A DNA stretch of 64,000 nt from Haliotis rufescens (GCF_023055435.1 NW_025964354.1:2294001-2358000); one strand, 5' to 3'. Positions 140 through 63,429 are shown, counted from the first letter of the stretch. The notes: generated by a model from the sequence alone, not told the origin. A program made the numbers and translations.

Positions 140-210
140 TCACTGGCGATTATTTATTTGATTCAGACTGAAGCTGTCGGTGTCAGTGATGTCTGGCTTT
201 TCTAGCTTTC
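140..210 (-). CDS. G1 putative terminal exon (truncated start of a 4th Ig domain, then TGA)
   Basis: Acceptor ...aaccccag|GA AAG in phase 1. RKLEKPDITD resembles RKPGKTNITA at the start of the G2 domain-4 exon. Stop at 140-142. Confidence 0.55.
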
Positions 211-3200
211 CTGGGGTTACAATGTGACGCTTGTCCATGAGAACTGGTTTATATCAGATTATTGTACTTCCCACTCTTTATATATGCTTGCTTTTGTAGA
301 ATACAAAGTATAATACAAGTAGTGCTATAATAATGGAGTAATACATGTTTTAATCTATGACGCTGCTTGATATATTTCAAGACATAAGGTGCCCCCAAAA
401 GGACAAAACATTTTTCCTGCCCGATCAACAGCACCCACCTCACGAACAATTTGCACAGTGAAGTAAGGGTTTGTTTTTGACCTCACGCCATAGACAGCAA
501 GACTCCTGCCATACGACGGAGGTCTGTGAACAATGGAGTCTGGTCTGAGCTACTTACGTGAGACAATCAGCTTATGTCCACACTGAGGTACACGGCGATA
601 TCCGCTGACACAGAAGTATTTGCCAGCGTCAGCTGCTGTAACATTATGAAGCAACAAACGTGCAATGACAAATTCAGATGAAGGACTAACTCCCTTGATC
701 TGTAGTCGTGAGGTATAGGTATGCCCAACATTCCATTTATCAGATAGCTTCCACATAAAATGTGGACCAGAGGGCGACGTGATGTAGGACCCGCTCTCCA
801 GTGAGGGCATCTTCCACGTCATCATGGCATCCTCTCCTCCAGGCACCACAGTGTAGTTCTTGTTATCATCAGACCAATCTGTAAAATAGATTTTTTTCGT
901 TTAGTATTTACGTATTGTCGTCAGCACATGACACTACTGTCTCTGATCAGACAGGAATTATTGAAAATACTAAGCTCAGATGGAAATCATGATACACACG
1001 TCCCGTTGAACACTTTTAGGTGAAAGCCCCCCTTCCAGCACCTAACTGGTTCACACTCATGTTTATGAGCATGCAACTCACCACCAACAATCAACTCGAC
1101 CAGTGTATATTGACATTGACGGTGATCTTGCGTTGGACGCGTCATTATTAATCCTTTGAGGTATAACTGAAGTAAAAATCATGTCTAATTGACGTGTTTG
1201 TTCAAACCACTCACATATTAGTGCAATATCCACACTCCACTCAGACTGTATCTCCCCCACTCCAGCCTGACACTTGTATCTGTCGTTCTCCCGCCAACTA
1301 TCACGAATGGTCAAGGTGCTGGTGTGGTTTATCTGTCTCCCATCATACACAGAGCTCCACGTCTCAGATGACGCCATGTGATTTCTCTCCCCACTATACA
1401 GCCTGATATTGTTTTCTCTCCATGTGACTGACACAGTTGGGACGCTATCCGGATAGATCCGTAGTCTACAGTTGCATGTCAGGTTCACGGTTCTGTTATG
1501 TTCCCTTTCAAGATGTATGTAGGGGTGATGAAAATCTAAAATGCAAAGCATCAATTCTAGACAATTGACACTGGGAATCAAAAAGCAAACTACACACTAA
1601 TGCTGTCTTCTCTTGATTATAGAATACACTCAATTAAAGACGTACGCGATTCTGATTGGTCTTTCAGAGGTTTGAAACCACAATGACCAACAGTTTTAAG
1701 GAGCTGATTTGACAGCCAGATCCCCGCTGAGTTGATATTTACAGAAACAGGATATACATTGTGCTTACTGCAGTATCCAATTTATGTGTGGCAATACATT
1801 TTGAGCAGAAAACGTGTATTTAGACTTTTCTGGACAACACAGAGCTTGGAATCTGGCCATTTTCTACTTCCCACTTTTACCTTTCCACCAAGATATACTT
1901 TGTCACTACCACATCAAGCTGACACACCGTCATATAACTGGACTACCGTTCAAATAACTAAACACTCTCTATTTATCACAGTGAATGGTGTGACGTAATT
2001 ATAGTCACTTAGAACTAATAGAACCAATACATGAAAGTCTTTCTGATCTATAAGTATAATGATGTAATAGCATCAGTATTGTAGCACATGCATGCTGTTT
2101 TATACAACCCATATAAATCATTGGACTCAACCCACAATACCTCACTCGATATATTCGCTAACACCAAACAGTAGGTGTTTAGTATGGTCATGGAAAATGG
2201 AGATTAACAATCTGATATTTTGATAAGATGTAACTACACCAAGAATAGGGAATTGAAACATTTGCCAAACCTGCGAGATCGGGTCAACATAAACATTTGC
2301 GCGGTTATATCTACAGGCTACCTGGTTCGGGTTCAGACCAATGGTCAATGAATAGGGCACAACTCAGAGACGCATTTCAGCTTAACGAAATATGCCACAC
2401 TGACATTTGTGACAATCTCATCATGGACACAAAACTGCTTGTCGTACTGGCATATGTGGTTCCGCTACAAGAGAAAAATATCTTAAACGTCACAAGCATC
2501 CTCTCCATTCACATAGTTTTGAACAAACATGTGTCTCATTTATTGCGATGGTGTTAGCGGTTGTGAAGGAGAGGGGTACAATAATTAAACAATATTGTGA
2601 AACAAATTCTTACCCATAACTTAAAGTGTCTGTCCACAGTTTGGCATCCTGATTCTTCTATAGGGGAGATATGATCACATAAGACACTCTTCCGCGAGTA
2701 CTCACCTATAACATCATGGCATGTCAGCTTAATGTTGGAGGAGAGTCAGAAGTTACGTTTACCATCTTGTCGAAACCTAGAAGCATGTTTACGGTGTGCC
2801 CGAACCAAGGATCACACACAGAACGAATTTTGGAGTCGAAACATACAGTCATTAAGCTCACATGGACATTCGATAATACATCAGAACCCTGCAGGTACTT
2901 ACCTATAACATAAAGTGTTTGTCCACAGTTTGGCATCCTTGTTCTTCTATACGGCGGACGTGTCGGGTCCAGGTGACAGCTGTACTGGCCAGCGTCAGAG
3001 GGGGTCACGTTATACAGTTGGAAACTGAAGGTTCCACGTGTGTAGGACAATGAGTCGCTATTAATCCTTGTCCTCAGTTCCTCATCAGCAAGTGTTACTT
3101 TATTGCTGCCAGTTATCTGAAACACTATCCTGTATTCCTTCATCACCTTGAACTCCTTGATGGGAGACATGGCCCACGTCACAGTCACAGGTCCTCCAAG

Positions 3201-4515
3201 GCGAGCATAGACGCCTGCAGCAGCTGAACAATACAACACGGATTTCATGAAGTTGTGGAAGTATGAGTGAGTGAGTGAGCATAGTTTTGGCCGCTTTTAG
3301 CAAATATCACGGCGGGGCACACCAGAAACGGGCTTCTCTAATTGTACCCATGTCGGGAACCGAACTCGGGCCTTCGGCGTGACGAACGAACACTTTAACC
3401 ACTAGCCTACCCGACCGCCCCTTTGGAGGTATGGACCAAGAACACAGTTAAACCTTATAATTTCAATATAAAAGGATGTAAGACCACGTCTTTCAAAGTA
3501 TATTTATTTCTTCCACTTTTTTAATCGTAGCATATATGTTATTTTAATGTTTGGCGAAATTATGTCAGTCGTCGCTAACAACTGGAGGGATGATGTAAAT
3601 CCGACTGAAGTCCATGCAGGTAGCAAAAGTACTGTAAGTCCCCATGATCCCCAGCGCGGTGATCGACTTTCAGTTGGTGGCGATCTATAGCCCGTTTTTA
3701 TAATGTGTTGTCGAATGATTAAGTTAGTTATCTATTTTAACATATTCTCAAACTAGTTTTACGAATATCTGTGATATGCTAGTTTTTATACTGCCCTTCG
3801 TCGGCAGAATTTTATACAGCTAAAATTATATTGTTGATGTCAAATTTTGTTTCGTCACGATATGGCTGAAAAATATTGCCGATGTGACGTTAAATCTTAA
3901 TTCACTCACTCACTCAATATAAAAGGCCAATTTTGTATAACTTTTCTGACGAAACATCCAAATACATGTGTCAAGACAATCATTCTTACAACCCTTGTAA
4001 ATCCATGGATTTACCGACTCTTACTGAATGACCTCTGCAGCAGTAACCACCAAGAAAACACCTGTTTCGCGAGATACGCGAGATTGTTTGAACTCACGTG
4101 TTGAGGTTTTATAGTAACAAGTATTTCGATACAAAATGCCAATTCTCTGTCGCTTTTCTAACGAATTGCTTACCCTTTTCGAAAAGGCCTGTTGCCATCA
4201 TAGACATACATCTCAAATACATATATGGCGGAAGCGATGTAAGTAATATTATTTTAAATTTGCTTACTTGTTGCTCCAATGTGGCTGTAATTCAAAAGAC
4301 AATACACGACCCAAGAATAAGGAAAGCAGCTCCACACACGTTGCATTGTGTCAATGCGCTGCCAGACTATTTCACACTGATTTGATGAAAGTTGTTTTTA
4401 GAGTGCAGATCGAGGAAGACGTGTATGTGAACGATAAAAAACACTGTTTCCGTGTACGTTGTTCTTGTTTCATTTACCTCAAGATGATTAACGCTATATT
4501 TGAAATATGAAACAT
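140..4515 (-). CDS. G1: IgSF gene, V*-C-V* plus short terminal exon, probably secreted (~372 aa). Exons: 4478-4515?, 4015-4061?, 2903-3223, 1215-1535, 558-878, 140-210
   Basis: Three 321-bp phase-1/phase-1 Ig exons with canonical AG/GT. The terminal exon after 'ccccag' reads RKLEKPDITDTDSFSLNQINNRQ*. The leader exons are tentative. The full model totals 1119 nt and is in frame. Confidence 0.7.
558..878 (-). CDS. G1 exon: atypical V-type Ig domain 3
   Basis: tttacag|...|gtaagt, 321 bp. WSDDNKNYTVVPGGEDAMMTWKMP...LLLHNVTAADAGKYFCVSGYRRVPQCGHKLIVS (DxGxYxC motif). Confidence 0.9.
1215..1535 (-). CDS. G1 exon: C/I-type Ig domain 2
   Basis: ttttag|...|gtgagt, 321 bp. VNLTCNC...VTWREN...TSTLTIRD...DRYKCQAG shows the canonical C-W-C triad. 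Confidence 0.9.
2609..2714 (-). pseudogene. Two duplicated fragments of the V*1 exon 3' end (G strand + splice donor) in the G1 intron
   Basis: 2609-2666 reads PYRRIRMPNCGQTL*VM|gtaag. 2696-2714 is atgttatag|gtgagtac, matching the G2 V*1 exon end near 17101-17116. Confidence 0.7.
2903..3223 (-). CDS. G1 exon: atypical V-type Ig domain 1
   Basis: ttcag|...|gtaagt, 321 bp. VYARLGGPVTVTWAM...FQLYNVTPSDAGQYSCHLDPTRPPYRRTRMPNCGQTLYVI. Confidence 0.9.
3264..3421 (-). mobile_element. SINE family A
   Basis: Reverse-complement match to 28366-28533. Confidence 0.75.
4015..4515 (-). CDS. G1 tentative two-exon leader (4478-4515 + 4015-4061): MFHISNIALIILRCFLGGYCCRGHSVRV
   Basis: ATG...AG|gtaaat (phase 2), then aaacag|47 bp|gtaaat (phase 1), joining the V exon in frame. 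Hydrophobic core present, but not homologous to the G2-G4 leaders. Confidence 0.35.
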
Positions 4516-6276: not shown

Positions 6277-7170
6277 GAACACGCACACACGTATTTAACA
6301 TGTAAATACGTACTTTCTCCCACACACAAACACGCACACACACGCGCATATACACATGTTCACACACACATACACATACACGCGCACACGCACACGCATA
6401 CACGCACACACGCACACACACATGATCCCATACGCACATACACATACACGCACACTTACATATACACACACACGCACACATACATGGACACGCATACACG
6501 CACACTTATACACACGTACACACGCATACACACACGAACACACATACGCAGACACACGCACGAACACAAACACACACGCACGCAAACATACACACACACG
6601 CATGCACACAAGCACATACAAATACATACACGCACGCTCACATACACACACGCGCACAGTGCGCACACGCACGAACACACATACACAGACACACGCACAC
6701 ATACACGCACACACACATACACACACGCACACACACGTACACACGCATACACAGATGCGCACACCCACACACTCACATACACATACACGCACGCACACAT
6801 ACACGCATACACACACATTCACTAGAGCGATAAATATACACACATACGCACGTACACATACGCGCACACACACATTCACGTACGCACACATACACACGCA
6901 TACACGCACACATACAAACACACACGCANNNNNNNNNNNNNNNNNNNNNNNNNNNNNNNNNNNNNNNNNNNNNNNNNNNNNNNNNNNNNNNNNNNNNNNN
7001 NNNNNNNNNNNNNNNNNNNNNNNNNNNNNNNNNNNNNNNNNNNNNNNNNNNNNNNNNNNNNNNNNNNNNNNNNNNNNNNNNNNNNNNNNNNNNNNNNNNN
7101 NNNNNNNNNNNNNNNNNNNNNNNNNNNNNNNNNNNNNNNNNNNNNNNNNNNNNTATGCACGTACACATAG
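6277..7170. repeat. Degenerate (CA/CG/TA)n microsatellite spanning an assembly gap (N 6929-7153)
   Basis: Seen directly. Confidence 0.95.
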
Positions 7171-9114: not shown

Positions 9115-10048
9115 GCCTAGTTAGGGGATATGTAGGGGTGATGGGTGGCGTCCCTCATCCTTGTGAAGAGTTGTCTTGTTAGGGAATATGTAGGGGTGAT
9201 GGGTGGCGTGCCTCATCCTTGTGAAGAGTTGTCTGGTTAGGGGATATGTAGGGGTGATGGGTGGCGTGCCTCATCCTTGTGACGAGTTGTCTTGTTAGGG
9301 AATATGTAGGGTTGACGGGTGGCGTGCCTCATCCTTGTGACGAGTTGTCTTGTTAGGGAATATGTAGGGTTGACGGGTGGCGTGCCTCATCCTTGTGACG
9401 AGTTGTCTTGTTAGGGATATGTAGGGGTGATGGGTGGCGTGCCTCATCCTTGTGAAGGGTTGTCTAGTTAGGGGATATGTAGGGGTGATGGGTGGCGTGC
9501 CTCATCCTTATGAAGAAGTGTCTAGTGAGGGGATATGTAGGGGTGATGGGTGGCGTGCCTCATCCTTGTGAAGGGTTGTCTTGTTAGGGAATATGTAGGG
9601 TTGACGGGTGGCGTGCCTCATCCTTGTGACGAGTTGTCTTGTTAGGGAATATGTAGGGTTGACGGGTGGCGTGCCTCATCCTTGTGACGAGTTGTCTTGT
9701 TAGGGAATATGAAGGGGTGATGGGTGGCGTGCCTCATCCTTGTGAAGAGTTGTCTAGTTTGGGGATATGTAGAGGTGATAGGGGGCGTGCCTCATCCTTG
9801 TGAAGTGTTGTCTAGTTAGGGGATAGGTAGAGGTAATAGGGGGCTTGCCTAATCCTTGTGAAGGTTTGTCTAGTTAGGGGATATGTAGGGGTGACGAGTG
9901 GCGTGCCTCATTATTGTGAAGGGTTGTCTAGTTAGGGGATATGTAGAGGTGATAGGGGGCGTGCCTCATCCTTGTGAAGGGTTGTCTAGTTAGAGGATAT
10001 GTAGGGGTGATGGGTGGCGAGCCTCATCCTTGTGACGAGTTGTCTTGG
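9115..10048. repeat. 58-bp G-rich minisatellite, ~16 copies, just 3' of G2
   Basis: Unit ttaggggatatgtaggggtgatgggtggcgtgcctcatccttgtgaagagttgtctag. Confidence 0.95.
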
Positions 10049-10271: not shown

Positions 10272-10941
10272 TTATAACACAGTTATGTCATCGCATTGAC
10301 CTGGCATGATCAAGCATTCCGTTTCATCAACTGTGTTTCCATTTTCATTGAGGGAAAGCTGCATAATGTGTTCTTTACTGTCCAGTTGTGTCGCCATAAT
10401 ATCACTGTTCTCTGATGATACTGTCCCCACCAACTCCTGGTATGCCTCAATAGTATCTCTTTTGATACCACTATCAGTATTGCGTTGTCTCTCTTCTCTT
10501 TGTTGGATAATGGACATTGTTTCAGCAATGATATTGTCCAAGTTAGATATGATTCTCAACACTGTGTCGGGATGAGAATCTATAGGAGAGCTTACTGACT
10601 GAGCTTCAGTTGAACTGATACCACCATGTACTGTCATACCTTGTTCCCCAAATGACACATTTCCATCCACTTCAGGGATTTCGTTTCGCATTTGTCTCCT
10701 CTTCTCTCCAATCCCAGATTCTGAAGTAGTTTCTGGGTCAGTACAGTCCAAATTCCCTAGGTCTGGTGCCTTGGTTGCTTGATGTTTCAAACTCTGGGAT
10801 GTCGATCTGACCGCTTGATCTACCTTCTGTCCTGCAGCTGACCCCGCTTGTGGCATATTGGCCTCAACAAACTCAGCATAGGTTATGCTTTGGAATGACA
10901 TACCTATATTGTCAGAGGGCGTGATAGGCGACTTGCAAAAC
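10272..10941 (-). CDS. G2 cytoplasmic-tail exon (~223 aa, acidic/Ser-Thr rich)
   Basis: ccacag|G TTT TGC, continuing into ORF 10272..10901. Confidence 0.8.
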
Positions 10942-13900
10942 CTGTGGATACAATGTCTTCTGTCATTTCCTATATGGCCAACATATTTAAATTTAAATTA
11001 TTCCACAGCTATTGACACTTTACAATAACGTAGCTTCTTCTTATTGACTCTATCCTCTATAATTGTTTTGTCATACCTTTTGGTATCTGTTATAATGCGA
11101 AATCTGATATGTTCCGTCACTGTTGAGAGGGGTGCTCATTTATAACCCTTAGTCCCACACTAATCCGCTAATTCTGGATTTTATCTACAACATAGTAAAC
11201 TTCTGTGACATGCATCACACTAAGGTATTTCTCCCACATGAAATGGAAATGCCCCATAAAACTGAACTACCGTTCGATGTGTTATAACTCAACTCATTCA
11301 CGCACTCACGTCACCAAGTTTTCAATGACAGTTTCAAGTTATTAATTAAAAAAACACACAAACCTGATCGTAAGATTGAAACCTTGTATCCTTCACACTA
11401 TAATGCCAAACATACTGTGTCAGGATGCTACATTATGCACAGATTGTCATAGTTTGTAAGGATATGTCTTTATGAGACTGTAATTCCTTGCTCTCTTGAA
11501 GACGGGGTGCACAAATGGCTAAAACACTTGCTCGTCACGGTCGAAGACCCGGGTTCGAGTCACCATATGGTAACAATGTGTCCCCCAAAGTGACGTTGCT
11601 AGAATATTGTTAAAAGCATCGAAAACGTGACCCACTCCTTTCAAAAGATGATATGTATACTGTATGTCAGATCCTACCTTCGATTCCAGCGTTCTGCAAT
11701 AAAACACCAAAAATATGTTTTCATTCAATTTATCTTTTGAAACATATATTATTGCGTCGATCGTCTACGTGGTCTACTGGGTAGAACGTCTGCCCAGAGA
11801 GCGGAAGTTTGGTGGTTCGATCTCGGCCGCGTCATACCAAACAACGTTTAACGATGGTACTTGCTGTTAACCTGTCTGGCCCTCGACATTTATGGTATAA
11901 AACATGAAATGGTTGACACTATACACATATCTACATTTATCTGTCTGAGGTGCCTTTTTCAGAAGCCATTAATAATAGAAATAAACCGAAATAATTACGA
12001 ATTTCATTATATCGCAGATTAACTATTAATATTTGGAAATCTTACCTCTGATATTCTTGTTTCGGACGAGTACCACGGCAGCAATGACGAGCAAGGTGAT
12101 AGCCAATATTAAACAGCCAATGGCAATGCCAGGAGAGGTCGTATCTGGAACATGTACAATGTATTGTATAATAATAACCAACATAATACAGAGTCGGGTA
12201 AGGGTAAGGGTAAGGGTAAGGGTAAGGGTCGGTCTGAGGGCAAGTTATTAAATGCATGAAAATAAATCAGTGACATTAAATAACATTGTTAGTGAAAAGT
12301 GGAACAATTTCATCATGGGAAATTGTGGTATTATTCCAATGTTTGAGCCTTTTACAAAATGAATATTGCTGATGTATAGAAAAATATTATTTAAAAACAA
12401 TAATAGTTTATTGCGTAAAATAATTAATTTGGCGCTAAACGCTGATGGACAGGATGACATTTGTGCGAACTGTAATTTCCTAAAAGTAGCTTCTTATAGA
12501 ATGAACAATGGCTTTTAGGTGAACGACCAAGGAAATTCGTCACGATTCTAAAGCATCAGTTATTGTCAATGAGAGCTCATTATGAATTGGTTATACAAGT
12601 GTTTGTCATATTCGACTCAAGGCTACAAATCACATTTAAAATAAACTCACGCGTATTCGTGTTGCTTCCTGCAAAGTGAGGAAGGAGATTTCGTGAAAAA
12701 GATAAAAGAAAAGCATTTCAAAGTCATCATCTAAGCAATGTAAACACCCCTGTATGGCACTAGTTATCATTATCTTACAATATATATCTTTACTAAAGGT
12801 TTTTGAAAACTGCCTACATCTTATGGGTGAGTGGGTACCGCTTTTAGCAATATTCCAGCAATATCACGTTGGGGGACACCGGAAATAGGCTTCACACATT
12901 GTACCCATGTCGGGAATTGAACCCGGGTCTTCGGCGTGACGTGCGAACTCTTTAACCACTAGGCTACCCGACAGCCCCTTACATCTAATGTGACATTAGA
13001 AGTACCCAAATTTAAAATTCGAATCTATAATTTCAATAATCGGCTACTTTGAGTTACACGTGATTGGCATACACATGAGTCATAGGTGTTTGGATAAATA
13101 TGACGCCATCCATTATGCAACAGCGCTGATACATTTCCATTTGACATAACACGCCGCTGGATTTCCTGAATGATATCCATGGCCATTTGAAACCCTTTGA
13201 ATTTGAAAGTCTCCTAACTATTAGATATATGATGTCTATCAAAATAATAAGTAAGTCAATCAGAATGAATATATTCATATATTTAGGACAGTATACATAC
13301 GTAGTTGAACATCCAGGACAAAGTCGCTGCTCCATCGCGACACCTGTCCACCCTCCTCTGTACCCTGGCATGAGTAGTTCCCACTATCCTCCTCTCTGAC
13401 ATCAGTGATTGTCAAGGTGGAGCCTGACATTTGGCACCTGGCTCCACACAGTAAGCTGGTGGTGTTTCTTCTCCAGATGTAGGCCATGTTGAGACTGTGG
13501 TCAGGTGGAAGACTCCGGGACGTGGAGGAACACGTCAAGGTTATGTTCTCACCCACACTAGGCAGGTCGGCGGCAGTGATATTCGTCTTCCCTGGCTTGC
13601 CTGGAATACATGGTAATATGTGTACATCAACATGACAATCTTCAACGTTTGTGTTTAGGCATAAATATATCTCGATTTTTCTTCTCTGACATTAAGTGAT
13701 ATTCAAGGTGGAGCCTAACGTTTGGCACCTTACTTAACTGTTCTAAGATGTAGGACATGGTCCGATCGTGATCGTGGCGAAAAAAAAACGGGACGTGGAG
13801 GAACGTTGCATGTCAGCCTTGAATCCCGAGTCAAATTGAACTCTTCTATGTTTCACGGTGTCAAAGGGAACTATCAGCTTATCATACACCTCACACTCGA

Positions 13901-46991: not shown

Positions 46992-47206
46992 AGGAGCCAT
47001 AACCTCAATACTATCAATGACTGAGACATACTATTGACCACCTTTTGCTTGGCCAACTCATCATAGTATACTAGATGTGTGACATTGCACGACGGTCACA
47101 ATTCCGTAGATATGTTCCCCCGTGTCACACGTCCGATCACTGTTCTCGTTCCGAGGCAGAGGCATCATACTACAAGGAACAGCCGCCGAATGTATCCTCT
47201 GGACAG

Positions 47207-50200: not shown

Positions 50201-53200
50201 CTAGACTCTCACGAGTCAACCTGCTGAGCACCTGATCTCCAATCATTGTTTGTATATTTCTAAATGTATGTTTTTCAAATAAAGATATTCTGAGGTAGAT
50301 AGTGTTCTAATGTAAAGAAATGGCATTCATCTAAAACACGGCAGTTGTATGACATTCGACTGGATATCACATCTATGCATTGTTGTTGATATAATCTGAG
50401 AGTTATACTGTGGATTCTGCCCTCAATCACATATTTGCAATTAAGTACATTGCTCATAAATGAATTTTACACAACAACTAACGTCTCATTATACAAGTTG
50501 CCAGCCTGCCTTTGATGTTGTAGTGTTTTAATCACTTACAGTTTGTAGACAATTCAGATTCTTCACTCCATTCAGACTGAACATCCCATCCCACCAGTTC
50601 AGCTTTACACGTGTATCTGCCTCTGGTACCATCACTGACGGTCAGAGAACCCTTGTGGTAGTAATAGTCTCCATGTAACTTAGAAACTGCCAAAGGAAGT
50701 CTTTCTATGTTTGCCACTTCGACTTCATTCCGCCTCCAACCCCAAGTAATTGATGTCTGTAAATACCCTTTCACGGCGACGTAACATGTCAGCGTGACAA
50801 TTTTATCGGCTTCAACTGTCTGAGGGGCGACGATGTAGGGATCCGCAATATCTGTTCATAAATATAATGTATGGCAATTGGTAGAGGTACAATGCAAGAA
50901 TCGTTACAGGGACCTAAACTCATATTTGAGTAAAACTACATAAACTCATCATGTATTATAAATGAAAATATACACATGTCACAGAACATTTTTCCAACAA
51001 GTAATAAGACAAAAGCGCTTGCAAAATGTATGTTCGATTGAGTATGAGGACGAGTATCCCTCTCGTGGCATGGTATTTGATATATTCTGGAAAAGGTACA
51101 TTTTGATGATTTTGTGAGTGAATATCAAAAGGAGATGGCCAGTAGTTTTGATTTGAGAGAACTTGTTTCAACTACATTTGTCTCATTTATCTGTTATTTG
51201 TGCTTGGTTGATTGTACTCATATTATTAAATCATACTCACATTTTACAAATAGCCGTTGACCACAGTCGTACACTCTTGACCCGGGCGAGCCTGGTGACC
51301 CTCTGTGACATCTGTACTCTGCACTGTCTGGCCAGTCCACATTATACAGCTCGAAGCTGAACACCCCAGATCCTGAAGAATTCACTCTCCCGGTGAATGC
51401 AGCTCTGGACTTGTATCTGTCAGTGACATTCACTTGATTGTAGTCAGTTATGTGGAACAGAGATTTCGAAGATAACCGTCGCACTGTAAATTCTCCGAGT
51501 CCAGGTCGGGGTAATTTCCACGACAGAAAGGCAGTACTCCCGAGGCGGGCGTGTGCAGGCACCGCAGCTGAAATAATACAATGCATGGTAAAACACACCC
51601 GAAGAAAACCAGGAAGCAGTAGTTCTGCCTGCGTTGTGTAGCAGATACAACTGAATGTCACGGTGCCAGTCATCACTGATCAGTTGGCCGCTCATTGAAA
51701 TGTGATTATAAAGATGTGTCCAATAGATACTAAGGTCAATTCATAAGTTGCTGTAGACTGTCACTGTAGTCTAAGCACGGATCGAGTCGAAACTACAATA
51801 GTTTGGATGTGCATTTGTTCACAAGGATGGGTCGTAGCGAGGATATTCGTGAACAATCATGCAATAAAACTCTCTGACATTTCTCAATGTATGCGTCAAT
51901 CCTGAGTTCAAGATTAGGGGGCTTAATGATCAGAATATATCAATAAAGCGGCAAAACGTTTTCCATATCCAAAACAATGCCTGTATAAAGCAGAGTCTAC
52001 GATTCCGATTATATCACGAGCTTGTGTTTATGAATCACTTTCAAGTAGTAATGATACCAGATCGTCGCGACCGGCGGCACCCTCACAAACACATGCAAAG
52101 GAAAGTCAGTTGTTCGCCTAAAACAAAACGGAAACATATGGTACAAGTCAAAATAGGGAATTGTATCGGACATACATTTTGTCAATGGTGGGTCAAATTT
52201 GGAAAAGTCCTCCACATATCTACCAAAAAACTTTTTGAAAGCTTTACTGAGGCCTTGAATGCTGTAATCTTGATCAAACAACTTCTGAGCAAGAGTCGCA
52301 TGACGCTCTTTGAAATCGTGGCACAAAGAACATGCTTTGTTGTATCTCAAATGTTGTGAAATGTAATCGCCAAATGCTGGAGCTGCTGGAATATTACTCG
52401 ACATTGAAGGGAAGTTGACTATTGGGAAGTGGAAGTCATCCCTCTTGTCATACAGTGTTGTGGAGAGTGTATTGTCACCCTGAATCTTTATGCAGAGATC
52501 TAAATATGGAACGGATGAGGTGGTCTCACTGGTCTCCTCTATTTCTTGTTCAAGTGGGTAAATCAGTGGAAGGGAATGGGCTATTTGACTGACATTGTGT
52601 ATTCGTGCTATCCCCCAGGAATGTGAAAAAAAGTCCGTCAGTGTTTACGTCATTTCAAGAAAACAGTCTCGAGAAACACGTATGAACGTCAGTTTCGCGG
52701 TCATGTGACCGACCTCTCGCCCAATGGAAATGCCGTATATCTTTTAAACTTCACATTACAAATCATACAGCTTTAAACTGTCATTTAGTAAAATAGAAAA
52801 ACGGTACCCATGACTTTTGAATTTCTTTTAAATGGATGGTTGTAACTGAAATCAATTTGTTTACACAGTCCATCATATTAGTTAATGTACATTTCATTTA
52901 TTTTCAAATCAATCAGATAGCATATCTGTTTGCGCTGAATGAACACACGATTTGCCGTGCTGTGTGTAGTCGCGATGGCACATCTAAGTATTTTGTCATT
53001 TCAAAGTGAGGCATGTTGTTTCCTCGTAAAAAATATATGTTTTGATAAAAGTTAGATTCGATTTCCCCAATACTTCAGCGCTCGCTATATTTAGTTCATA
53101 GGAATGTTATGGTATGCATCGTGAAGTGATGCGGCGGTGTGTTTACATTCTGTCATTATAGGCATGCATATTACGGGCATATTGCGAACTTACATTGAAC

Positions 53201-53816
53201 ATTCTTTAAAAATCATTTATAATAAATAATATAATGTACACAGTAATTATCATAAATACGAGATATTTACCATCCCAAAACACACAAATGTCATAACTTC
53301 TCTTGTAGTTAGTTATTTCGAACATCCGATTTTGAAGCCACAAAGATATTCATGTTGCGATTTTAGATTGAAATACTTATATATTATTAGTAATTAATTA
53401 GCATTGACTTAATATAAGCTTGAAAGAAGTGTGGAAGATGAAAGCAAATGTCATCCGAAGTTTACAGAGAAAAGAAATTTAAGGAAAGGACATTTAGGCA
53501 AGACGTTGGCACCCCCATGAGCACCAATGGTGCTTCACAGTCAGTTTTTTTGTGTTGTTTCAATCAAACCATAGCATTTACTTTGATAAAGGATTTCTTG
53601 ATCGCAACTTTAGTAAACCTACACAGCATTCAAATTCGAGAAATGGACATTAATTGTTAGGAATAAGCCCCCATCTGTAACAGCTATGATAACATACCTA
53701 CACGAGGAAGCGAGGTAAGTAGTAATGTAACAAAATCACTCACGTGTAGCCCCCGTCCAGCAGTCTGTCACTATACTGCAGACAATACAAAGTACACACC
53801 ACAACGAGGGTCGCAT
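47207..53816 (-). CDS. G4: IgSF receptor, leader-V*-C-V*-stalk-TM with frameshifted tail (~433 aa). Exons: 53744-53816, 51241-51567, 50540-50851, 49522-49857, 48718-48765, 47898-47960, 47207-47349 (ancestral-frame stop at 47061)
   Basis: Close paralogue of G5. The TM exon is 63 bp versus 61 bp in G5. There is a 12-bp in-frame deletion in domain 2 and the stalk donor is shifted by 6 nt. Confidence 0.75.
47445..47582. other. Assembly gap (Ns) in the G4 TM-tail intron
   Basis: Run of N. Confidence 1.
47583..47820 (-). mobile_element. SINE family B
   Basis: Paralogous to 59300-59572. Confidence 0.7.
47898..47960 (-). CDS. G4 transmembrane exon (GYAVLIGILVAVLILYLLTN)
   Basis: tttacag|63 bp|gtaaga. 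Confidence 0.8.
49522..49857 (-). CDS. G4 exon: atypical V-type Ig domain 3
   Basis: 336 bp, tttacag|...|gtacgt. Confidence 0.9.
50540..50851 (-). CDS. G4 exon: C-type Ig domain 2
   Basis: 312 bp. VTLTCYV...TWGWRRN...DGTRGRYTCKAE. Confidence 0.88.
51241..51567 (-). CDS. G4 exon: atypical V-type Ig domain 1
   Basis: 327 bp, atttcag|...|gtgagt. Confidence 0.9.
52009..52615 (-). mobile_element. Penelope-like retroelement RT C-terminal fragment
   Basis: LYDKRDDFHFPIVNFPSMSSNIPAAPAFG.YISQ.LRY..AC motif, typical of PLE reverse transcriptases. Confidence 0.75.
53744..53816 (-). CDS. G4 signal-peptide exon MRPSLWCVLCIVCSIVTDCWTGAT
   Basis: 73 bp, ATG to phase-1 gtgagt. Confidence 0.82.
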
Positions 53817-54685: not shown

Positions 54686-55633
54686 AGAGTTATCACCATG
54701 GGGCAGGAGTTATCACCATGGAGCAGGAGTTATCATCTTGGGGCAGGAGTTATCACCATGGGGCAGGAGTGATCACCATGGGGCAGGAGTTCTCATCATA
54801 GGGCAGGAGTTATCACCATGGAGCAGGAGTTATCATCTTGGGGCAGGAGTTATCACCATGGGGCAGGAGTGATCACCATGGGGCAGGAGTTCTCATCATA
54901 GGGCAGGAGTGATCACCATGGGGCAGGAGTTCTCATCAAAGGGCAGGAGTGATCACCATGGAGCAGGAGTTCTCATCATAGGGCAGGAGTTATCATCTTG
55001 GGGCAGGAGTTATCACCATGGGACAGGAGTTATCACCTTGGGGCTGTCGTTATCACCATGGGGTAGCAGTTATCGCCATGGGGCAGGAGTGATCACCATG
55101 GGGCTGTAGTTATCACCATGGGGCTGTAGTTATCACCATGGGGCTGTATTTATCACCATGGGGCTGTAGTTATCACCATGGGGCAGACGTTATCACCATG
55201 GGGCAGGAGTTATCACCATGGGGCTCTAGTTATCACCATGGGGCTCTAGTTATCACCATGGGGCGGGGGTTATCACCTTGGGGCAGAAGTTATCACCATG
55301 GGGCTGTAGTTATCACCATGGGGCAGGAGTTATCACCATGGGGCAGGAGTTATCACCATGGGCCAAGAGTTATCACCATGGGGCAGGAGTTCTGACCATA
55401 GGGCAGGAGTTATCATCTTTGTGCAGGAGTTATCACCATGGGGCAGGAGTTATCACCTTTGGGCAGGAGTTATCACCATGGGGCTGTAGTTATCATCATA
55501 GGGCAGGAGTTATCACCTTGGGGCAGGAGTTATCACCATCGGGCAGGAGTTATCACCTTGGGAGCAGGAGTTATCACCATGGGACAGGAATTATCACCAT
55601 TGAGCGGGGGTTATCACCATGGGGAAGGTGTTA
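54686..55633. repeat. 20-bp satellite array (~47 copies), paralogous to 40403-45228
   Basis: Same unit and same flanks. Confidence 0.97.
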
Positions 55634-56460
55634 TGTATGACTCAGTCTACTCCACTTTCCATCCGGTTTCACATGTGATCTCGCACTTCCCCGTGTTCAG
55701 TTACTGTTACTATAAAACTATATGTTTCAACGGTGTGTGTATAATGTAGGTTGGCGGTGTGTGTGTTTCTGTCTTGCGAGGACGACCTCTGCTGTAGGTC
55801 ACATGCCACTCAGACAAGCAATCAGTTTTTTTCTGAGAATCCGTTGGACGCTAGCTAACCGCAGCTACGTTCACACTGTTAAATTTGCTAATTTTCAGGA
55901 TGACATGAAACAGGACATGTTTTAATGTCATAAAACACTTGAATGGGTTACGCAGATCATATTCGAGCTGGGGTCAATGCTCGAAAATACGTTAATCATA
56001 TCAATGAATATAAGGCTTCTTTGTACGTGACTTCGAGTGACTCAATTTAACGGCGTATCATCTTGTTGTGGAAGGAAATCACGAGGCGATGCAGGTCTCA
56101 CACTTTCCTCACTGTGGTGAAACCAACGAGCACGGATGTGGTGCAAACCTTAACAAATATTCATGGAGAACCAAGATTTGTACACAGAATGACAGCATTC
56201 TGCCAAGGCTAAGGGACACAACTCTGCATAGGACATTTTGGCGTCTTGGACGAAAGGGCCACCCTGCCCCTGCTGCATAATGAACACGAGAAATTGTTTC
56301 GAAGCCATAATTTATTTTAAACTAATTACACAGCTGTAATGTGAAAAGAAAATTAAAAAAAGTTCGTGGAATGCATAACAAAAGCGTTTTCGTTTGGGAT
56401 ATGTACATCAGGTCACTGATATGATCTTTATAAGAGATTCATACTTCTATGGTGAAATCC

Positions 56461-57401
56461 AAGCCATGGTTACACCTTATCGACAACGTTCTGTTGTTGT
56501 TCGGCATCTCTGTATGGGGACAACTCCCATACTACACAATAACATAAGCCATGGTTAGACCTTATCGACAACGTTCTGTCGTTGTTTGGCATCTCTGTAT
56601 GGGGGACAACTCCCATACTACACAATAACATAAGCCATGGTTACACCTTATCGACAACGTTCTGTCGTTGTTTGGCATCTCGGTATGGGGACAACTCCCA
56701 TACTACACAATAACATAAGCCATGGTTACACCTTATCGACAACGTTCTGTCGTTGTTTGGCATCTCTGTATGGGGACAACTCCCATACTACACAATAACA
56801 TAAGCCATGGTTACACCTTATCGACAACGTTCTGTCGTTGTTTGGCATCTCTGTATGGGGACAACTCCCATACTACACAATAACATAAGCCATGGTTACA
56901 CCTTATCGACAACGTTCTGTTGTTGTGTGGCATCTCTGTATGGGGACAACTCCCATACTACACAATAACATAAGCCATGGTTACACCTTATCGACAACGT
57001 TCTGTCGTTGTTTGGCATCTCTGTATGGGGACAACTCCCATACTACACAATAACATAAGCCATGGTTACACCTTATCGACAACGTTCTGTTGTTGTGTGG
57101 CATCTCTGTATGGGGTACCACTCCCACACTACATAATAACATAAGCCATGGTTACACCTTATCGACAACGTTCTGTTGTTGTTCGGCATCTCTGTATGGG
57201 GGACCACTCCCACACTACATAATAACATAAGCCATGCTTACACCTTATCGACAACGTTCTGTTGTTGCTCGGCATCTCTGTACGGGGTACCACTCCCATA
57301 CTACACAATAACATAAGCCATGGTTACACCTTATCGACAACGTTCTGTTGTTGGTCGGCATCTCTGTTTGTGGGACCACTCCCACACTACATAATAACAT
57401 A
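56461..57401. repeat. ~85-bp tandem repeat, ~11 copies
   Basis: Same unit as 46562-46991. Confidence 0.92.
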
Positions 57402-57965
57402 TAGGAACCATAACCTCAATACTATCAATTACTGAGACATACTATTGACCACCTTTTGCTTGGCCAACTCATCATAGTATACTAGATGTGTAGGTCACAT
57501 GCCACTCAGACAAGCAATCAGTTTTTTTCTGAGAATCCGTTGGACGCTAACTCGCAAGCTATTGATTGCTAGCCCGAAAAGCTAACCGCAGCTACGTTCA
57601 CACTGTTAAATTTGCTAATTTTCAGGATGACATGGAACAGGACATGTTTTAATGTCATAAAACATTTGAATGGGTTACGCAGAACATATTCCAGCTGGGA
57701 GTCAATTCTCGAAAATACGTTAATCATATTAATGAATATAAGGCTTCTTTGTACGTGACTTCGAGTGACTCATTTTAACGGCGCATCAGCATGACGTGGA
57801 AGGAAACCACGAGGCGATGCAGGTCTCACACTTTCCTCACTGTGGTGAAACCAACGAGCACGGATGTGGTGCAAACCTTAACAAATATTCATGGCGAGCC
57901 AAGATTTGTACACAGAATGACAGCATTCTGCCAAGGCTAAGAGACACAACTCTGCATAGGACATC

Positions 57966-58747
57966 ACATAAGCCATGGTTACACCTTATCGACAGCGTTC
58001 TGTTGTTGTTCGGCATCTCTGTATGGGGGACCACTCCCACACTACATACATAACATAAGCCATGGTTACACCTTATCGACAACATTCTGTTGTTGTTCGG
58101 CATCTCTGTATGGGGCACCACTCAAATGCAACATACATAACATAAGCCATGGTTACACCTAATCGACAACGTTCTGTTGTTGTTCGGCATCTCTGTATGG
58201 GGCACCACTCCCATACTACATAATAACATAAGCCATGGTTACACCTTATCGACAAGGTTCTGTCGTTGTTTGGCATCTCTGTATGGGGGACAACTCCCAT
58301 ACTACATAATAACATAAGCCATGGTTCGACCTTATCGACAACGTTCTGTTGTTGTTCGGCCACTCTGTATGGGGTACCACTCCCATACTACATAATAACA
58401 TAAGCCATGGTTACACCTTATCGACAACGTTCTGTTGTTGTTCGGCATCTCTGTATGGGGCACCACTCCCATACTACATAATAACATAAGCCATGGTTAC
58501 ACCTTATCGACAAGGTTATGTCATTGTTTGGCATCTCTGTATGGGGGACAACTCCCATACTACATAATAACATAAGCCATGGTTGCACCTTATCGACAAC
58601 ATTCTGTTGTTGTTCGGCACCTCTGTATGGGTACCACTCCCATACTACATAATAACATAAGCCATGGTTACACCTTATCGACAACGTTCTGTTGTTGTTT
58701 GGCATCTCTGTATGGGGGACCACTCCCATACTACATACAAAACATAT
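57966..58747. repeat. ~86-90-bp tandem repeat, ~9 copies, 3' of G5
   Basis: Same unit. Confidence 0.92.
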
Positions 58748-58816
58748 AGGAACCATAACCTCAATACTATCAATTACTGAGACATACTATTGACCACCTT
58801 TTGCTTGGCCAACTCA

Positions 58817-59105
58817 TCATAGTATACTAGATGTGTGACATTGCACGACGGTAACAGTTCCGTAGATATGTTCCTCCGTGTCACACGTCCGATCACTGTT
58901 CTCGTTCCGAGGCAGAGACATCATACTACAAGGAACAGCCGCCGTATGTATCCTCTGGACGGTCACACCATCCGGCGTATTTTGTCCTGCTCCAGCGCTG
59001 TCTGGTTGCCATGGTAGCTCATGTTCTTCTCCACTACACACGTCCGTGTTACTTCCTCCGTCGTCTTCATGCCGTGACCTCTTGCATTGAATACAGAAAG
59101 AACGC
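58817..59105 (-). CDS. G5 cytoplasmic-tail exon
   Basis: tttctgttgaag|G CGT TCT. Open frame to the stop at 58817. Confidence 0.72.
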
Positions 59106-62100
59106 CTTCAACAGAAATGAGCAGTGATGTACAGACTGGTATTCTGGTACCAGATAGACAAACAAGGGAAACAGTAAAACATATTGTTCGTGTTACAATT
59201 TCAAATACAAAATATTTCAGCATAGGTGAGGTGAAATTGGGTTTACCGTCGCGTCCAAGATTTTTCACATATATGGCGACGTTCATGCACGTGTTTGTGT
59301 GGCTTCTTGTACTAGTCCGGACTGATACCTATTTATAGTGCTAGCTCACTGAGATACCATGCCGCATTTCAACCTGAATACTACCCGACTCAGACACAGT
59401 TTACTGACTCCGAACCAACCAGTCCTTGTTTTAGCCCCTTAATGCCGAGCGCCAGACAGGGTAACAACAAATGCCATCATTTAACGTCTTTTGGTATGAC
59501 GCTGCCGGGGATCAAACCCCGGACCTTCCGCTCTCCGGACGGCTGCTCTACCACTGGACCACGGAAACGGTCTTTCAGTGTAGGAGTTACAGGTACTTAT
59601 TCCGAATAGATGATCTCCAAAGAATACATGCGATCAAAGTGTGGTCTTACCGTTTGATAACAAATACAATGAGAACCGCTACCAGGATTCCTATAAGAGC
59701 GGCATATCCATCTGTGATATAAAAATATCATTTACTTTACATATACAATTAACTGGTCGTTGAGAAAATTCCAGTCGAGTGTTCACCACATGTTTGGCAG
59801 GGAGAACGTTTTCATGAGGCATTATAACCATGGCCTAAGCATATGCACTATAATATTGATATCAATATACCATTGCCAGTAGGTATGATTCTGGATAAAA
59901 AAGCGACAATGCCATTTCCATAATCATAAGAAATCATTCGAGTCCAATATACGATTGCGACTATATCATAAGCAAATGTTTATATAATCAGCATGTCAAA
60001 TAGTGATGGTAGCAGATATTCGCGAAAAGGTAAGCGATGGTAGCACCGTCATAAACACATGCAAAGGAAGTCAGTTTGGCTTTGCTTGTCAATGATGAGA
60101 CATATTTTGAAAAGTCCTCCACCTGTCTGCCATACCAATTGTAGAAAAGTTCACTTAGGTCTTGAATCACTTCATATAACCAAGTACATACTTAGCACTA
60201 CGTATACTACCCGAAAAACGTATACTACCCGAGTATACACTGTATACAGAGTGACTATAAACTGCTCCTGTTTGCACTGTTTCTCCTGTTTCTGCACTAC
60301 ATATGACTATACACAAAGTCGAGTCTGTACTTACACAAACTAGGGGATGTCACATGGGCCTTTGAGTGTGGTTCTTGTGATGTCATTGATAGATACGTAG
60401 CTGAAAATGAATAGTACAGTCAACACAATACATGATTTACACAAAACACAGGTCACAGTATAAACTATTTGCCGAACGATGAATTGCAACCCCACTCTAC
60501 ACCAGTCACTTATATACTTACACTTACTCGGCGATGTCATAACTGGCTTTGTTGCAGTGGCGTCATGACCTGAAATGTATTGAATGCTATATACTAAGCT
60601 ACACTATGCATCAATATATTACACTTCATATTTGTATACATTACAAAAACAAAACTCACAAAACACATATTACTAGTATATAACTATAACATTCAGAATG
60701 CATGCATTCAACAACTTGCATAAGACAAAAAAGTATGTACCTTAACAAAATACATCTTCTATTTATATCAACTTTTTCTAAGGGAATACATTCTTATGTT
60801 AAATATTTTGACATACTTCCATTGACACTATTGTGGTCACTGCCTAATGAAGAAGCCTACGTTATTTTCTATTTACATGATTTGTCTTTGCTGAGGGTGA
60901 TAACTTTATGTTTACACAAACCTGAAACAATTTAATATCAAGTTTATGTGCCAAGGGCTAATTGAAAATTATTTCACTAGGGACACAAATGTCATATCAA
61001 ATCGAAGTGAGTGCATTAATAGTCCATTTATTACCACATATATACTTTGAAGAGGAATCTGCATACGATAGGGTTTTCCTTCCATATTATGGCTTTTCAC
61101 TGCCTAAGTTGCCTCTTACGTCCTACAGTATCTGTTTCGTCGAAAACTCGAAACTTGTTATTTTCTTGCATTAACTTTTCATCTTTATATTTGTGAACTG
61201 AATTACCTCTCAGAGTGATTAACGAAATACTCACTCACTCATTTTTATTTTGACAGTTAAGTAGCACAGCTGACGCAATACACATAACACCGGATTACAA
61301 CTGTGAACGTAAGAGACACGTACGTGAGACAAACAGGTCGTGTATACACCGAGTCATGGAAATCTTGGTTGCACCTTTTTCCTCTCTCCTGCAGGTGTAC
61401 CTTCCAGCATCAGCTAGTGTAACATTGTAGAGACGAAAGACATAGGTGCTGGTGTTACGGGAGGTAACAACCTCCACCATCCTGGTTCTGAGCCAGTACT
61501 CAGGAAGTATGTAGACCTTATTGGAATCCACTGCCATAAACTTATCCCCACTAGGTGTCATGATGTAGAATTCATATCGATAACGAGGCATCTTCCAGGC
61601 TACCATGGCATGATCACCTTCACGCACTTGTGTGTAGTTCGGGACTTTTTCCATCTTTGCTGTAAAACATCACAATTACACATACATAAGTTAACAGTGT
61701 GCATGTATGAGTGAAAGCGTACTGACATGAGCGCGGGTCTGTGTTTCATGTTCATGTGAAAGCGTAATGTGCATAGTGCTGAATCAGTTGCAATATTAGT
61801 GATATTGGGAGGCAATAAATACACATTTCAATTTTGTCATTACTATGGATGTGTACAGAGCTCTTTAAAAAATATAGAATACTTGATTATTATCGTTCTT
61901 TACTTCCTGGGGTGTATATAACCCAACCATTAACAGTCACACTACCATCTCCTCCAACTGGTTAGGGTGCTGTATGAACAGGATCACACTAGACTCCCAG
62001 GAGTCAACCTGCCGGACACCTGATTTGTATATTAATAAAACAAATTCAAATAAAGATAGTGTAATGTAAATGTTGTGTAAAGAAATGACATTCGTCTGTA

Positions 62101-63429
62101 ACAGGGGGCTAAGATAGAAAGTCTCATCAAGTTAACACATGACTAGCTAGATACTGGCATGACTGTATGGATCATAAGTTGTAACAGAAGACATTTGTAT
62201 GACCTTCGTCTGGAGATTACATCTATGTCTTGTTGTTATTACAATCTTATACTACTAGGTAAACTGTGGATTCTGCCCTCTGCCCCTAGAAGCATTTGTA
62301 ATTAGGATGAATGAGTTGGTCATATGAACATGCATATTATACAACTTGACTACCTGCCTTTGATGTTGTAGTGGTTTAGTCACTTACAGTCTGTGGACAT
62401 TGTAAATTCTTCACTCCAGTCAGTTTGAACATTCCATCTCACTAGTTCAGCTTTACACGTGTATCTCCCTCTGTCATCATCCTGTCCTACATCACTGACT
62501 ATCAGAGCGCTCTTAAGGTAGAAGTAGTCTCCATGTAACTTCGAAACTGCCAAAGGATGTATTCCTATGTTTACATGTTCGACTTCATTCCGCCTCCAAC
62601 TCCAAGTTACTAATGTATGTATGTACCCTTTCACGGCGACGTAACATGTCAGCGTGACATTTTTATCGGCTTCAACTGTCTGAGGGGCGACGATGTAGGC
62701 AACCGCAATATCTGTTCATAAATATAATGTATGGCTATTGGTAAAGGTACAATGCAAGGGTCGTTACAGGGACCTTAACTCATATTTGAGGACAACTATA
62801 TAGCATACTCATCATTTCTAAATGAAAATATACACATGTCACAGAACATTTTTCAAACAAGTAATAAGACAAATGCGCTGGCAAATTGTATGTTCGATTG
62901 AGCATCAGGACATGAGAATACCTCTCGTGGCATGGTATTTGATAGATTATGGAAAAGGTATATTTTGATAATTTTTTGAGTGAATATCAAAAGCAGATGG
63001 CCAGTAGTTTTGATTTCAGAGAGCTTGTTTCAGCAACATTTGTCTCATTTATCTGTTATTTGTGCTTGGTTGATTGTACTCATGTTATTAAATAATACGC
63101 ACATATTACAAATAGCCATTGACCACAGTCGTACACTCTTGACCCGGTAGAGCGTGGTGACCCTCTGTGACATCTGTACTCTTCATTGTCTGGCCAGTCC
63201 ACATTATACAGCTGGAAGCTGAACACCCCAGATCCTGAGGAATTCATTCTCCCGGTGAATGTTGCTCTGGACTTGTATCTGTCAGTGACATTCACTTGAT
63301 TATAGTCAGTTATGTGGAACAGAGATTTCGAAGATATCCGTCGCACTGTAAACTCTCTGAGTCCAGGTCGGGGTAATGTCCACGACAGAAAGGCTGTACT
63401 CCCGAGGCGAGCATATGCAGGCGACGCAG
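58817..63429 (-). CDS. G5: IgSF receptor, 5'-partial (leader beyond window), V*-C-V*-stalk-TM-tail. Exons: 63103-63429, 62388-62711, 61324-61659, 60528-60569, 59651-59711, 58817-59105
   Basis: GT-AG with consistent phases. TM GYAALIGILVAVLIVFVIKR joins in phase 2 to RSFCIQCKRSR...EEHIYGTV...HTSSIL*. Confidence 0.82.
59300..59572 (-). mobile_element. tRNA-derived SINE family B (also 47583-47820 -, 13912-14152 +, 11760-11920 +)
   Basis: tRNA-like head followed by cataccaaaagacgttaaa...ggcgctcggcattaagggg...atctcagtgagctagcactataaa, shared among copies. Confidence 0.7.
59651..59711 (-). CDS. G5 transmembrane exon
   Basis: atcacag|61 bp|gtaaga. Hydrophobic run ending KR. Confidence 0.85.
61324..61659 (-). 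CDS. G5 exon: atypical V-type Ig domain 3
   Basis: 336 bp. Confidence 0.9.
62388..62711 (-). CDS. G5 exon: C-type Ig domain 2
   Basis: 324 bp. NVTLTCYV...TWSWRRN...DRGRYTCKAE. Confidence 0.9.
63103..63429 (-). CDS. G5 exon: atypical V-type Ig domain 1
   Basis: 327 bp. Paralogue of G3/G4 domain 1. Confidence 0.9.

Follow-up and report, generated by a model that had tools for sequence, protein, structure and literature searches.

What sort of gene family strings sixteen immunoglobulin (Ig)-like exons along one strand of a mollusc genome, and what might its products do? The question is raised by a stretch of 64,000 nucleotides, here called the window, that forms part of a 2.54-Mb scaffold from Haliotis rufescens, the red abalone (NW_025964354.1:2294001-2358000). 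A preliminary description, made from the sequence alone, had placed the stretch in a lophotrochozoan-like host, as indeed it proved, and had proposed a locus of five paired-receptor or allorecognition genes. In our reading, to which we give a probability of roughly 0.6, the window captures one section of a longer tandem cluster, whose genes encode type I membrane proteins of the immunoglobulin superfamily (IgSF) that form a family restricted to Haliotis and serve as cell-surface recognition receptors. The anatomy of the genes, their fold, taxonomic range, copy number and moderate constraint are what the analysis shows. The family is anonymous so far and known only through automatic RefSeq models. 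Five such models map to the window with 100% identity, every one of them named 'uncharacterized protein', and a literature search found no paper that mentions these models or describes the family, in keeping with the earlier suggestion of an undescribed, lineage-restricted IgSF family without a name.

Anatomy of the cluster

The sixteen Ig-like exons lie in minus-strand stop-to-stop frames across the 64 kb and fall into five units, each with a V-like, a C-like and a second V-like domain. Every Ig exon is preceded by AG and followed by GT, is in phase 1, and has a length that is a multiple of three. Two subfamilies can be told apart: subfamily A consists of A1 (0.5-3.3 kb) and A2 (10.3-21.1 kb), with about 87% amino acid identity, and subfamily B of B1 (27.5-39.5 kb), B2 (47.1-53.8 kb) and B3 (58.8-63.4 kb), with 84-94%. 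These units, in the order A1, A2, B1, B2, B3, had earlier been numbered G1 to G5. The first and third domains, V1 and V2, are about 30% identical to each other and are referred to jointly as V* below.

The cluster runs past both ends of the window. Examination of 20 kb of the same contig on either side brought the count to at least eight units in 104 kb. In window coordinates, where negative positions precede the first base, the units outside the window are an extra A unit at -13 to -10 kb, a fourth B unit (B4) at 64.9-67.2 kb, and a more distant paralog, unit X, at 75.4-80.4 kb, whose transmembrane (TM) segment and tail lie at 75.4-76.4 kb.

The Ig exons are followed downstream by Ser/Thr/Pro-rich stalk exons, short and again in phase 1, and these by a TM exon and a tail. 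A micro-exon of 16 nt between TM exon and tail is conserved in A1, A2, B1 and X and is present in the RefSeq models of A2 and B1. Only A2, B1 and B2 have a recognisable leader exon, which is conserved among them, comprises 24 codons, is in phase 1 with a GTGAGT donor, and is located 1.8-3.6 kb upstream of V1. The plan of a gene would then be a leader, a V* domain, a canonical C-type Ig domain, a second V* domain, in A-type genes a canonical fourth Ig domain (Ig4), then stalks, TM segment and tail, with one Ig domain to each symmetric phase-1 exon. The splicing of the units rests on exon borders and on the RefSeq models, which agree with the called exons, leader and micro-exon included; exons were searched singly, and the full-length proteins used are database models only.

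A2 is a complete gene (10275-21061, on the minus strand like all the units described here). Its leader lies at 20989-21061, V1 at 17108-17428, C at 15812-16138 and V2 at 14648-14968, followed by the canonical Ig4 (13301-13600), a small stalk (about 12652-12666), the TM exon (12046-12144), the micro-exon (11678-11693) and the tail (10275-10940). These calls coincide with RefSeq XP_046378087.2 (LOC124150189, 714 amino acids) in every exon, and the same leader is included there. The preliminary description had given this gene a TM segment and a long tail resembling an immunoreceptor tyrosine-based inhibitory motif (ITIM) tail; the TM segment and a tail of about 222 residues are there, the canonical ITIM is not.

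A1 had been described as probably secreted. Within the window (558-3223) it is represented by V1 (2903-3223), C (1215-1535) and V2 (558-878), recognised from open reading frames (ORFs), paralog identity and splice borders. Its remaining exons, namely a canonical Ig4 (-329 to -33), a TM exon (about -1968 to -1807), the micro-exon (-2558 to -2543) and a tail ORF of 322 codons (-3864 to -2899), lie just past the low end of the window, and the 'secreted' form is therefore an artefact of the window edge. No leader exon was found for A1. An assembly gap (6929-7153) sits in a CA/GT microsatellite (6321-6925) within the spacer between the 3' end of A2 and A1 V1, about 3.6 kb upstream of that V1, which is the leader-to-V1 distance of A2. 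Because the distances match and the A1 leader was not found, this gap may hide it.

Among the B units, B1 (27547-39531) has its leader at 39459-39531, V1 at 37374-37700, C at 36664-36987, V2 at 35610-35945, a stalk at 34611-34649, the TM exon at 29491-29601, the micro-exon at 28167-28182 and a tail at 27547-27783 that contains YAVI and SDYEEV, which bears out the TM segment and ITIM tail claimed for it. The part from V2 to the tail is RefSeq LOC125375934. B2 (47064-53816; RefSeq XP_048242944.1, LOC124150164) consists of a leader (53744-53816), V1 (51241-51567), C (50540-50851, with a 12-nt in-frame deletion ahead of the YxC motif), V2 (49522-49857), a stalk (48719-48763), a TM exon (47848-47958) and a tail exon (47064-47351) that is intact and now out of frame. 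The frameshifted tail reported earlier was thus correctly seen, being due to a 2-bp insertion in the TM exon relative to B3. A second gap (47445-47582) falls in the TM-to-tail intron of B2, with flanks collinear with B3; its 138 N match up with 131 bp in B3 (59201-59331), where the B3 RefSeq model has no exon. Neither gap touches a recognised exon.

B3 (58820-63429) comprises V1 (63103-63429), C (62388-62711), V2 (61324-61659), two stalks (60523-60567 and 60336-60398), a TM exon (59650-59709) and a tail (58820-59104) with CxxC, YGTV and a C-terminal SSIL, just as the CxxC/YxxV/PDZ tail ascribed to it would have it; the stretch from V2 to the tail is RefSeq LOC125375955. The five head-to-tail units with their V*-C-V* core and phase-1 exons stand as first described, a pattern well outside what chance would produce, except that B3 may not be a gene in its own right. 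No leader exon could be found for it, B4 is located 1.4 kb upstream, and RefSeq XP_048242992.1 (LOC125375959) splices the V2 and stalk of B4 to the V1 and C of B3. The downstream homology of B4 to B2 and B3 ends at 63944, after which come a 25-bp tandem repeat and then the acceptor of B3 V1. The B4 stalk exon and the B3 V1 exon share phase 1, and the same V2-stalk-V1-C junction occurs in two models from Haliotis cracherodii. From the missing leader, the RefSeq splice and the recurrence of the junction in H. cracherodii, it follows that B4 and B3 probably form one six-Ig transcription unit, or else that B3 is promoter-less.

The V* domain and the range of the family

Only two cysteines are invariant (29/29) when 29 V* exons are aligned, of which nine belong to the window and twenty to other scaffolds: the one in the YxC motif and another 8-15 residues later. 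The canonical B-strand cysteine is present in none of these exons. The AlphaFold2 model of V1, with a predicted local distance difference test score (pLDDT) of 92.5, is a nine-strand sandwich in which the invariant cysteine pair lies on the neighbouring F and G strands; the predicted F-G disulfide would staple the FG hairpin. A model of the whole B2 protein (pLDDT 81) contains three Ig domains and a TM helix.

Foldseek matched V1 to antibody VH domains and nanobodies, with TM-scores of 0.6-0.69. A wide fold search yielded a flat list with the first domain (D1) of Necl-4 at Z 12.3 and CD200, CD80, OPCML, nectins and CD48/58 at Z 10-11. V-set domains were all that the fold searches with V1 returned, and the protein atlas likewise gave V-set clusters. 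When the whole three-Ig ectodomain was submitted to Foldseek, the matches were generic multi-Ig proteins with low TM-scores, Necl-4 being the highest. Against Pfam, V* scores 13-20 bits with the V-set profile (PF07686), below the cut-off of 26, the C domain scores 34.4 bits with Ig_3 (cut-off 30), and A2 Ig4 scores 41.4 bits with ig. The units belong to the immunoglobulin superfamily, and V* has the V-set fold, yet it is not a canonical V-set domain (PF07686), lacking the B-F disulfide and staying under the Pfam threshold. An assignment of the C domain to the C1-set was considered, given 22-23 bits with that Pfam profile (cut-off 21) and weak matches in the PDB to antibody VH-CH1 (E 2e-5), and was rejected because Ig_3 scores higher and the model has the tight C-C' hairpin typical of C2/I-set domains.

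Within V*, the CC' loop and the C'' region vary most, and the BC and FG tip loops are conserved. The notion that V* undergoes diversification like that of complementarity-determining regions was dropped, since the BC and FG loops are not the peaks of variability.

The family is large. At least 134 matches to the V1 exon (E <= 0.001) occur in the H. rufescens genome; the majority form long arrays on a 32.7-Mb scaffold, at 3.3-6.4 Mb and at 26.3-27.3 Mb, and others are spread over four further scaffolds. When the B1 V1 exon was compared by phmmer with 1.84 billion representative proteins, no more than 37 matches resulted, and the source was looked up for 34. All 29 of the whole-domain matches looked up come from H. 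rufescens, H. cracherodii, H. asinina or H. rubra; the remaining five cover 25-40 residues near the F strand and belong to bacterial repeat proteins, frog FcRL5 and two environmental proteins. A profile search returned Haliotis only, bar two generic Ig matches (a Ptychodera contactin and an environmental protein), each to less than 10% of the query. No cnidarian protein was found among the phmmer matches looked up or in the profile search. Sequence and fold searches, put forward earlier as a check, gave looked-up whole-domain matches from Haliotis only, a generic V-set fold, and no nectin or CADM by sequence. The databases searched include other annotated molluscs; other vetigastropods may not be in them, and for that reason a range of 'Haliotis only' may equal 'vetigastropod, unsampled'.

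The arrangement that recurs among Haliotis proteins is (V*)-V*-C-V*-(Ig)-TM. In some RefSeq proteins V* alternates with CUB domains, as in a 'DMBT1-like' protein of 982 amino acids encoded on the 32.7-Mb scaffold, which has no detectable TM segment; such V*-CUB proteins may, from their sequence, be secreted. In the arrays of that scaffold, tens of kilobases separate one V*-like exon from the next.

A single chromosome or scaffold carries all of the looked-up matches in H. asinina and nearly all of those in H. cracherodii. This fits what has been reported from a relative in the same genus: on chromosome 4 of H. gigantea, Ig-domain (PF13895) genes termed NCAM-like have been amplified by tandem and segmental duplication, and this chromosome is poorly syntenic between haplotypes, with H. 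rufescens and H. asinina showing this pattern too (Hirase et al. 2025, PMC12627906). That study, however, deals with domain enrichment only, and describes neither V* nor the V-C-V plan nor any tail modules.

Tail modules and exchange between units

The ectodomains are joined to two unrelated 3' modules. Members of module 1, found in A1, A2, B1 and X, have in common the end of the TM segment, the micro-exon and the opening residues of the tail, together with a positionally conserved tyrosine motif, Yxx(I/F), that appears as EYDVI, TYAEF, EYAVI and AYAVI; tails of this kind are confined to the contig of the window. The B1 and X tails share 68% amino acid identity, with YAVIEDTDGS and an 18-residue block around SDYEEV invariant. 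Taking the ITIM pattern as [SIVL]xYxx[IVL], canonical motifs are found in B1 (SDYEEV, kept in X) and, separately, in A1 (SLYEDV); A2 and B3 have none. Module 2 belongs to B3, and an intact copy lies behind B2, which makes two copies in the whole genome. Its features are a CxxC, a single YG(T/I)V and the C-terminal SSIL, all of which are retained in H. cracherodii. Judging from these motifs, module 1 tails would dock SH2 proteins at phosphotyrosines, in the inhibitory, SHP-recruiting style, and module 2 tails would bind PDZ scaffolds.

No immunoreceptor tyrosine-based activation motif (ITAM) is present in any tail, no fibrinogen domain in the tails or the RefSeq models, and no Lys or Arg within the TM segment of any of the five units. 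The TM segment of A1 (-1968 to -1807, minus strand) has a glutamate in mid-membrane, at a position where A2 has a hydrophobic residue; this acidic residue could mediate pairing with a partner chain.

One exchange between units concerns B1. Its V1-C region has about 91% DNA identity to B2, and its TM segment and tail have about 90% and 68% amino acid identity, respectively, to those of X; a 5-kb intron holding a Tc1/mariner remnant separates the ectodomain from the 3' module. On these comparisons B1 is a module swap, in which a B-type ectodomain has been combined with module 1. The orphan tail exon of B2, for its part, is 92% identical to the tail exon of B3. It differs by nine nonsynonymous and three synonymous changes, a ratio of nonsynonymous to synonymous rates (dN/dS) of about 0.86 that, from such small counts, fits relaxed constraint. 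Because of the 2-bp lesion and the near-neutral state of the exon behind it, the tail-less B2 looks like the outcome of decay and not like a designed decoy.

The ectodomains themselves are under constraint, though of a weak to moderate kind: concatenated, they give dN/dS values of 0.34-0.60 in six B-B and three A-A comparisons, all below 1. Most site patterns favour the grouping (B1,B2),(B3,B4), which switches locally, for example to 98.5% identity between B2 and B3 around V2, and this discordant local similarity is compatible with some gene conversion. Best matches between species, at 81-88%, are no closer than paralogs within a species, a soft comparison in that only representatives of 90% clusters entered it. 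The cluster changes through tandem duplication, unequal exchange and small lesions. B4 and B3 have been fused head to tail, with the loss of one TM/tail and one leader, B2 has lost its tail to the 2-bp insertion, and B1 has its B-type ectodomain joined to module 1. The original picture of shared ectodomains with divergent tails in a recombining cluster is well served by these observations, namely the fusion, the swap of a 3' module and the locally discordant similarity.

Repeats occupy much of the ground between exons. A 20-bp minisatellite lies upstream of the B1 leader (40404-45228, 241 copies), with a second array upstream of the B2 leader (54687-55634, 47 copies); its GC content is about 50% and it belongs to the duplicated block. 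Arrays of an 85/86-bp minisatellite follow directly after the B3 stop codon (56461-57401 and 57966-58746), and a shorter one lies downstream of the B2 tail exon (46558-46990). Such arrays yield long artefactual ORFs in several frames, and two long ORFs considered as tails (45942-46739 and 57840-58786) were rejected as frames running through 30-bp and 85/86-bp minisatellites. Around A2 there are minisatellites of 58 bp (9120-10047, downstream of the stop codon), 35 bp (18665-19685, in the leader-to-V1 intron) and 41 bp (23770-24202, in the upstream spacer). The Tc1/mariner transposase remnant (32197-33083, plus strand) is recognised by HTH_Tnp_Tc3_2 (E 8e-16) and DDE_3 (E 6.5e-9) and is split over two frames. 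It lies in the 5-kb stalk-to-TM intron of B1, which is the interval of the 3'-module exchange.

Single-domain relatives adjoin the cluster. A leader exon at -19842 to -19768 (minus strand) belongs to LOC124150163/LOC124150153, near-identical small RefSeq genes whose products of about 220 amino acids combine a signal peptide with a single V*-like domain, a Ser/Thr stalk and a C-terminus that is hydrophobic and resembles a glycosylphosphatidylinositol or TM anchor.

What the receptors may do

That the products are cell-surface recognition receptors is what we infer, and several findings pull the other way. In the C domain of B1 the canonical B-strand cysteine is replaced by serine, the extra AT in the TM exon of B2 shifts the frame, and B3 is without a leader. 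The RefSeq models of B1, B2 and B3 either have no signal peptide or are broken between C and V2, and since they are so fragmentary, transcript support for complete B genes is doubtful. The tails contain no Pfam domain, the ITIM of A1 is lost in A2, and shuffled tails yield at least one ITIM match in 8-41% of trials (0.08 for B1, 0.41 for A1); a lone match is weak evidence, drawing weight only from the conservation between B1 and X. The conserved BC and FG loops of V*, moreover, argue against a diversified repertoire.

Lesions of this sort raise the question of whether segmental duplication, very active in this region, has left most of the five units as decaying by-products, with only a few functional members located elsewhere. 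The frameshift in B2, the lost cysteine of B1, the leaderless B3, the A1 leader that was not found, introns and spacers filled with minisatellites and a transposon remnant, and the fragmentary RefSeq models of the B genes are all what such a history might leave behind. Yet all sixteen Ig exons are open with intact splice sites, ectodomain dN/dS is below 1 in all nine comparisons, A2 is complete at 714 amino acids, and the V2-stalk-V1-C fusion is modelled twice in H. cracherodii, so that the fused arrangement has been retained across species. General decay is for these reasons an improbable account of the locus. A more serious rival, if still an unlikely one, sees the proteins as lineage-specific adhesion molecules of the nectin/Necl(CADM)/IgLON type, non-immune, with an N-terminal V domain that binds in trans and a tail coupled to scaffolds. 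Three features make it serious: structural neighbours that include Necl-4 and nectins, an end resembling a PDZ ligand, and tip loops that are conserved. Necl-4 is the top structural neighbour of both V1 and the three-Ig ectodomain, followed by nectins, OPCML/IgLON, CD200 and CD48/58; the SSIL end of B3 resembles a PDZ ligand and is conserved in H. cracherodii, the V* tip loops are conserved across paralogs, and the Ig-rich region of abalones has been annotated as NCAM-like (PMC12627906). Like nectins and CADMs, the abalone proteins have three Ig domains, a TM segment and, in B3, a short tail with a C-terminal PDZ-type motif. With Z of 10-12 throughout, however, the fold list is flat and of the generic V-set kind, neither phmmer nor the profile search found sequence-level homology to nectins or CADMs, and the domain order is V-C-V instead of V-C-C. 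Massive tandem amplification restricted to one genus, together with dN/dS values of 0.34-0.60, would be unusual for core adhesion molecules, and the second tail module, ITIM-like and with conserved tyrosine motifs, also speaks against that scheme.

The paired activating/inhibitory receptor locus or allorecognition locus that was originally proposed is, in our judgement, very improbable. What speaks for it is the presence of ectodomains 84-94% identical behind which stand an ITIM tail (B1), another tail (B3) or no tail (B2), the recombination of the cluster, interspecies matches (81-88%) no closer than paralogs of the same species, and the haplotype differences reported for the Ig-rich abalone chromosome (PMC12627906). 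The resemblance to the vertebrate SIRP, LILR/KIR, CD300 and NITR systems covers several features: a tandem cluster, an N-terminal V-type domain, one domain to each phase-1 exon, near-identical ectodomains with different tails, ITIM-type tyrosine motifs in some members, and even a tail-less member, SIRP-gamma, as B2 is here. The likeness ends with the activating partner. Paired receptors need one, bearing either its own ITAM or a short tail with a basic TM residue that recruits an ITAM adaptor, and in this one defining feature the paired-receptor reading fails, since none of the five TM segments contains Lys or Arg and no tail contains an ITAM; the ITIM matches, moreover, are weak singly. The loss of the B2 tail is a 2-bp lesion with a near-neutral orphan exon behind it, and beyond the Ig fold there is no homology to SIRP, LILR, NITR or Alr. 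The V-C-V order and the absence of the B-F disulfide from the V domains further set the abalone family apart from the vertebrate receptors. As to allorecognition, no direct support for it emerged. The Hydractinia Alr genes are, like these, an invertebrate IgSF family clustered in tandem and restricted to one lineage; their V-like domains are divergent, with poor Pfam scores, and their tails bear tyrosine motifs. No homology between the two is detectable, though, and the V* tip loops are conserved, not hypervariable. The analysis covered one haplotype assembly, and the reported haplotype non-synteny (PMC12627906) bears only indirectly on extreme allelic polymorphism of the kind that governs fusion or rejection through Alr. 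Abalones, in addition, are solitary animals.

Cell-surface recognition remains the preferred reading, and within it an immune role, in haemocytes, is the leading guess, made plausible by analogy with amplified IgSF families of other invertebrates. A fuller version would make the V*-C-V* genes one arm of an abalone-specific, haplotype-variable innate recognition system, with at least 134 V* matches concentrated on a chromosome reported to be non-syntenic between haplotypes; in it, module 1 ITIM tails would set inhibitory thresholds in haemocytes and exon-module exchange would couple the same ligand specificity to different outputs. This version is tentative and rather unlikely in its full form; if it is true, the cluster would be a molluscan, independently evolved analogue of the LILR/KIR/NITR clusters. 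A molluscan parallel is offered by the fibrinogen-related proteins (FREPs) of Biomphalaria, also an expanded tandem IgSF family with a proposed part in immune recognition. FREPs, in contrast, are secreted and have a fibrinogen C-terminus, whereas the abalone genes encode TM segments and tails and no fibrinogen domain, and no FREP sequence match was obtained.

Tandemly amplified, lineage-specific IgSF families such as FREPs, NITRs, Alr and VCBPs are central to the diversity of recognition in animals without antibodies. To these the present analysis adds a large, apparently abalone-confined family whose V-set variant lacks the canonical disulfide and has gained an invariant F-G cysteine pair. 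The window also illustrates how new receptor outputs may originate, by the swap of a tail module, the fusion of genes or a frameshift. Its present value is that of an annotated lead and not of a mechanism, function being still guesswork. Abalones are farmed, and they are affected by withering syndrome and herpesvirus disease. A candidate family of inhibitory receptors, possibly lying in a region reported to differ between haplotypes, is in this respect a lead both for comparative immunology and for the genetics of disease resistance in abalone.

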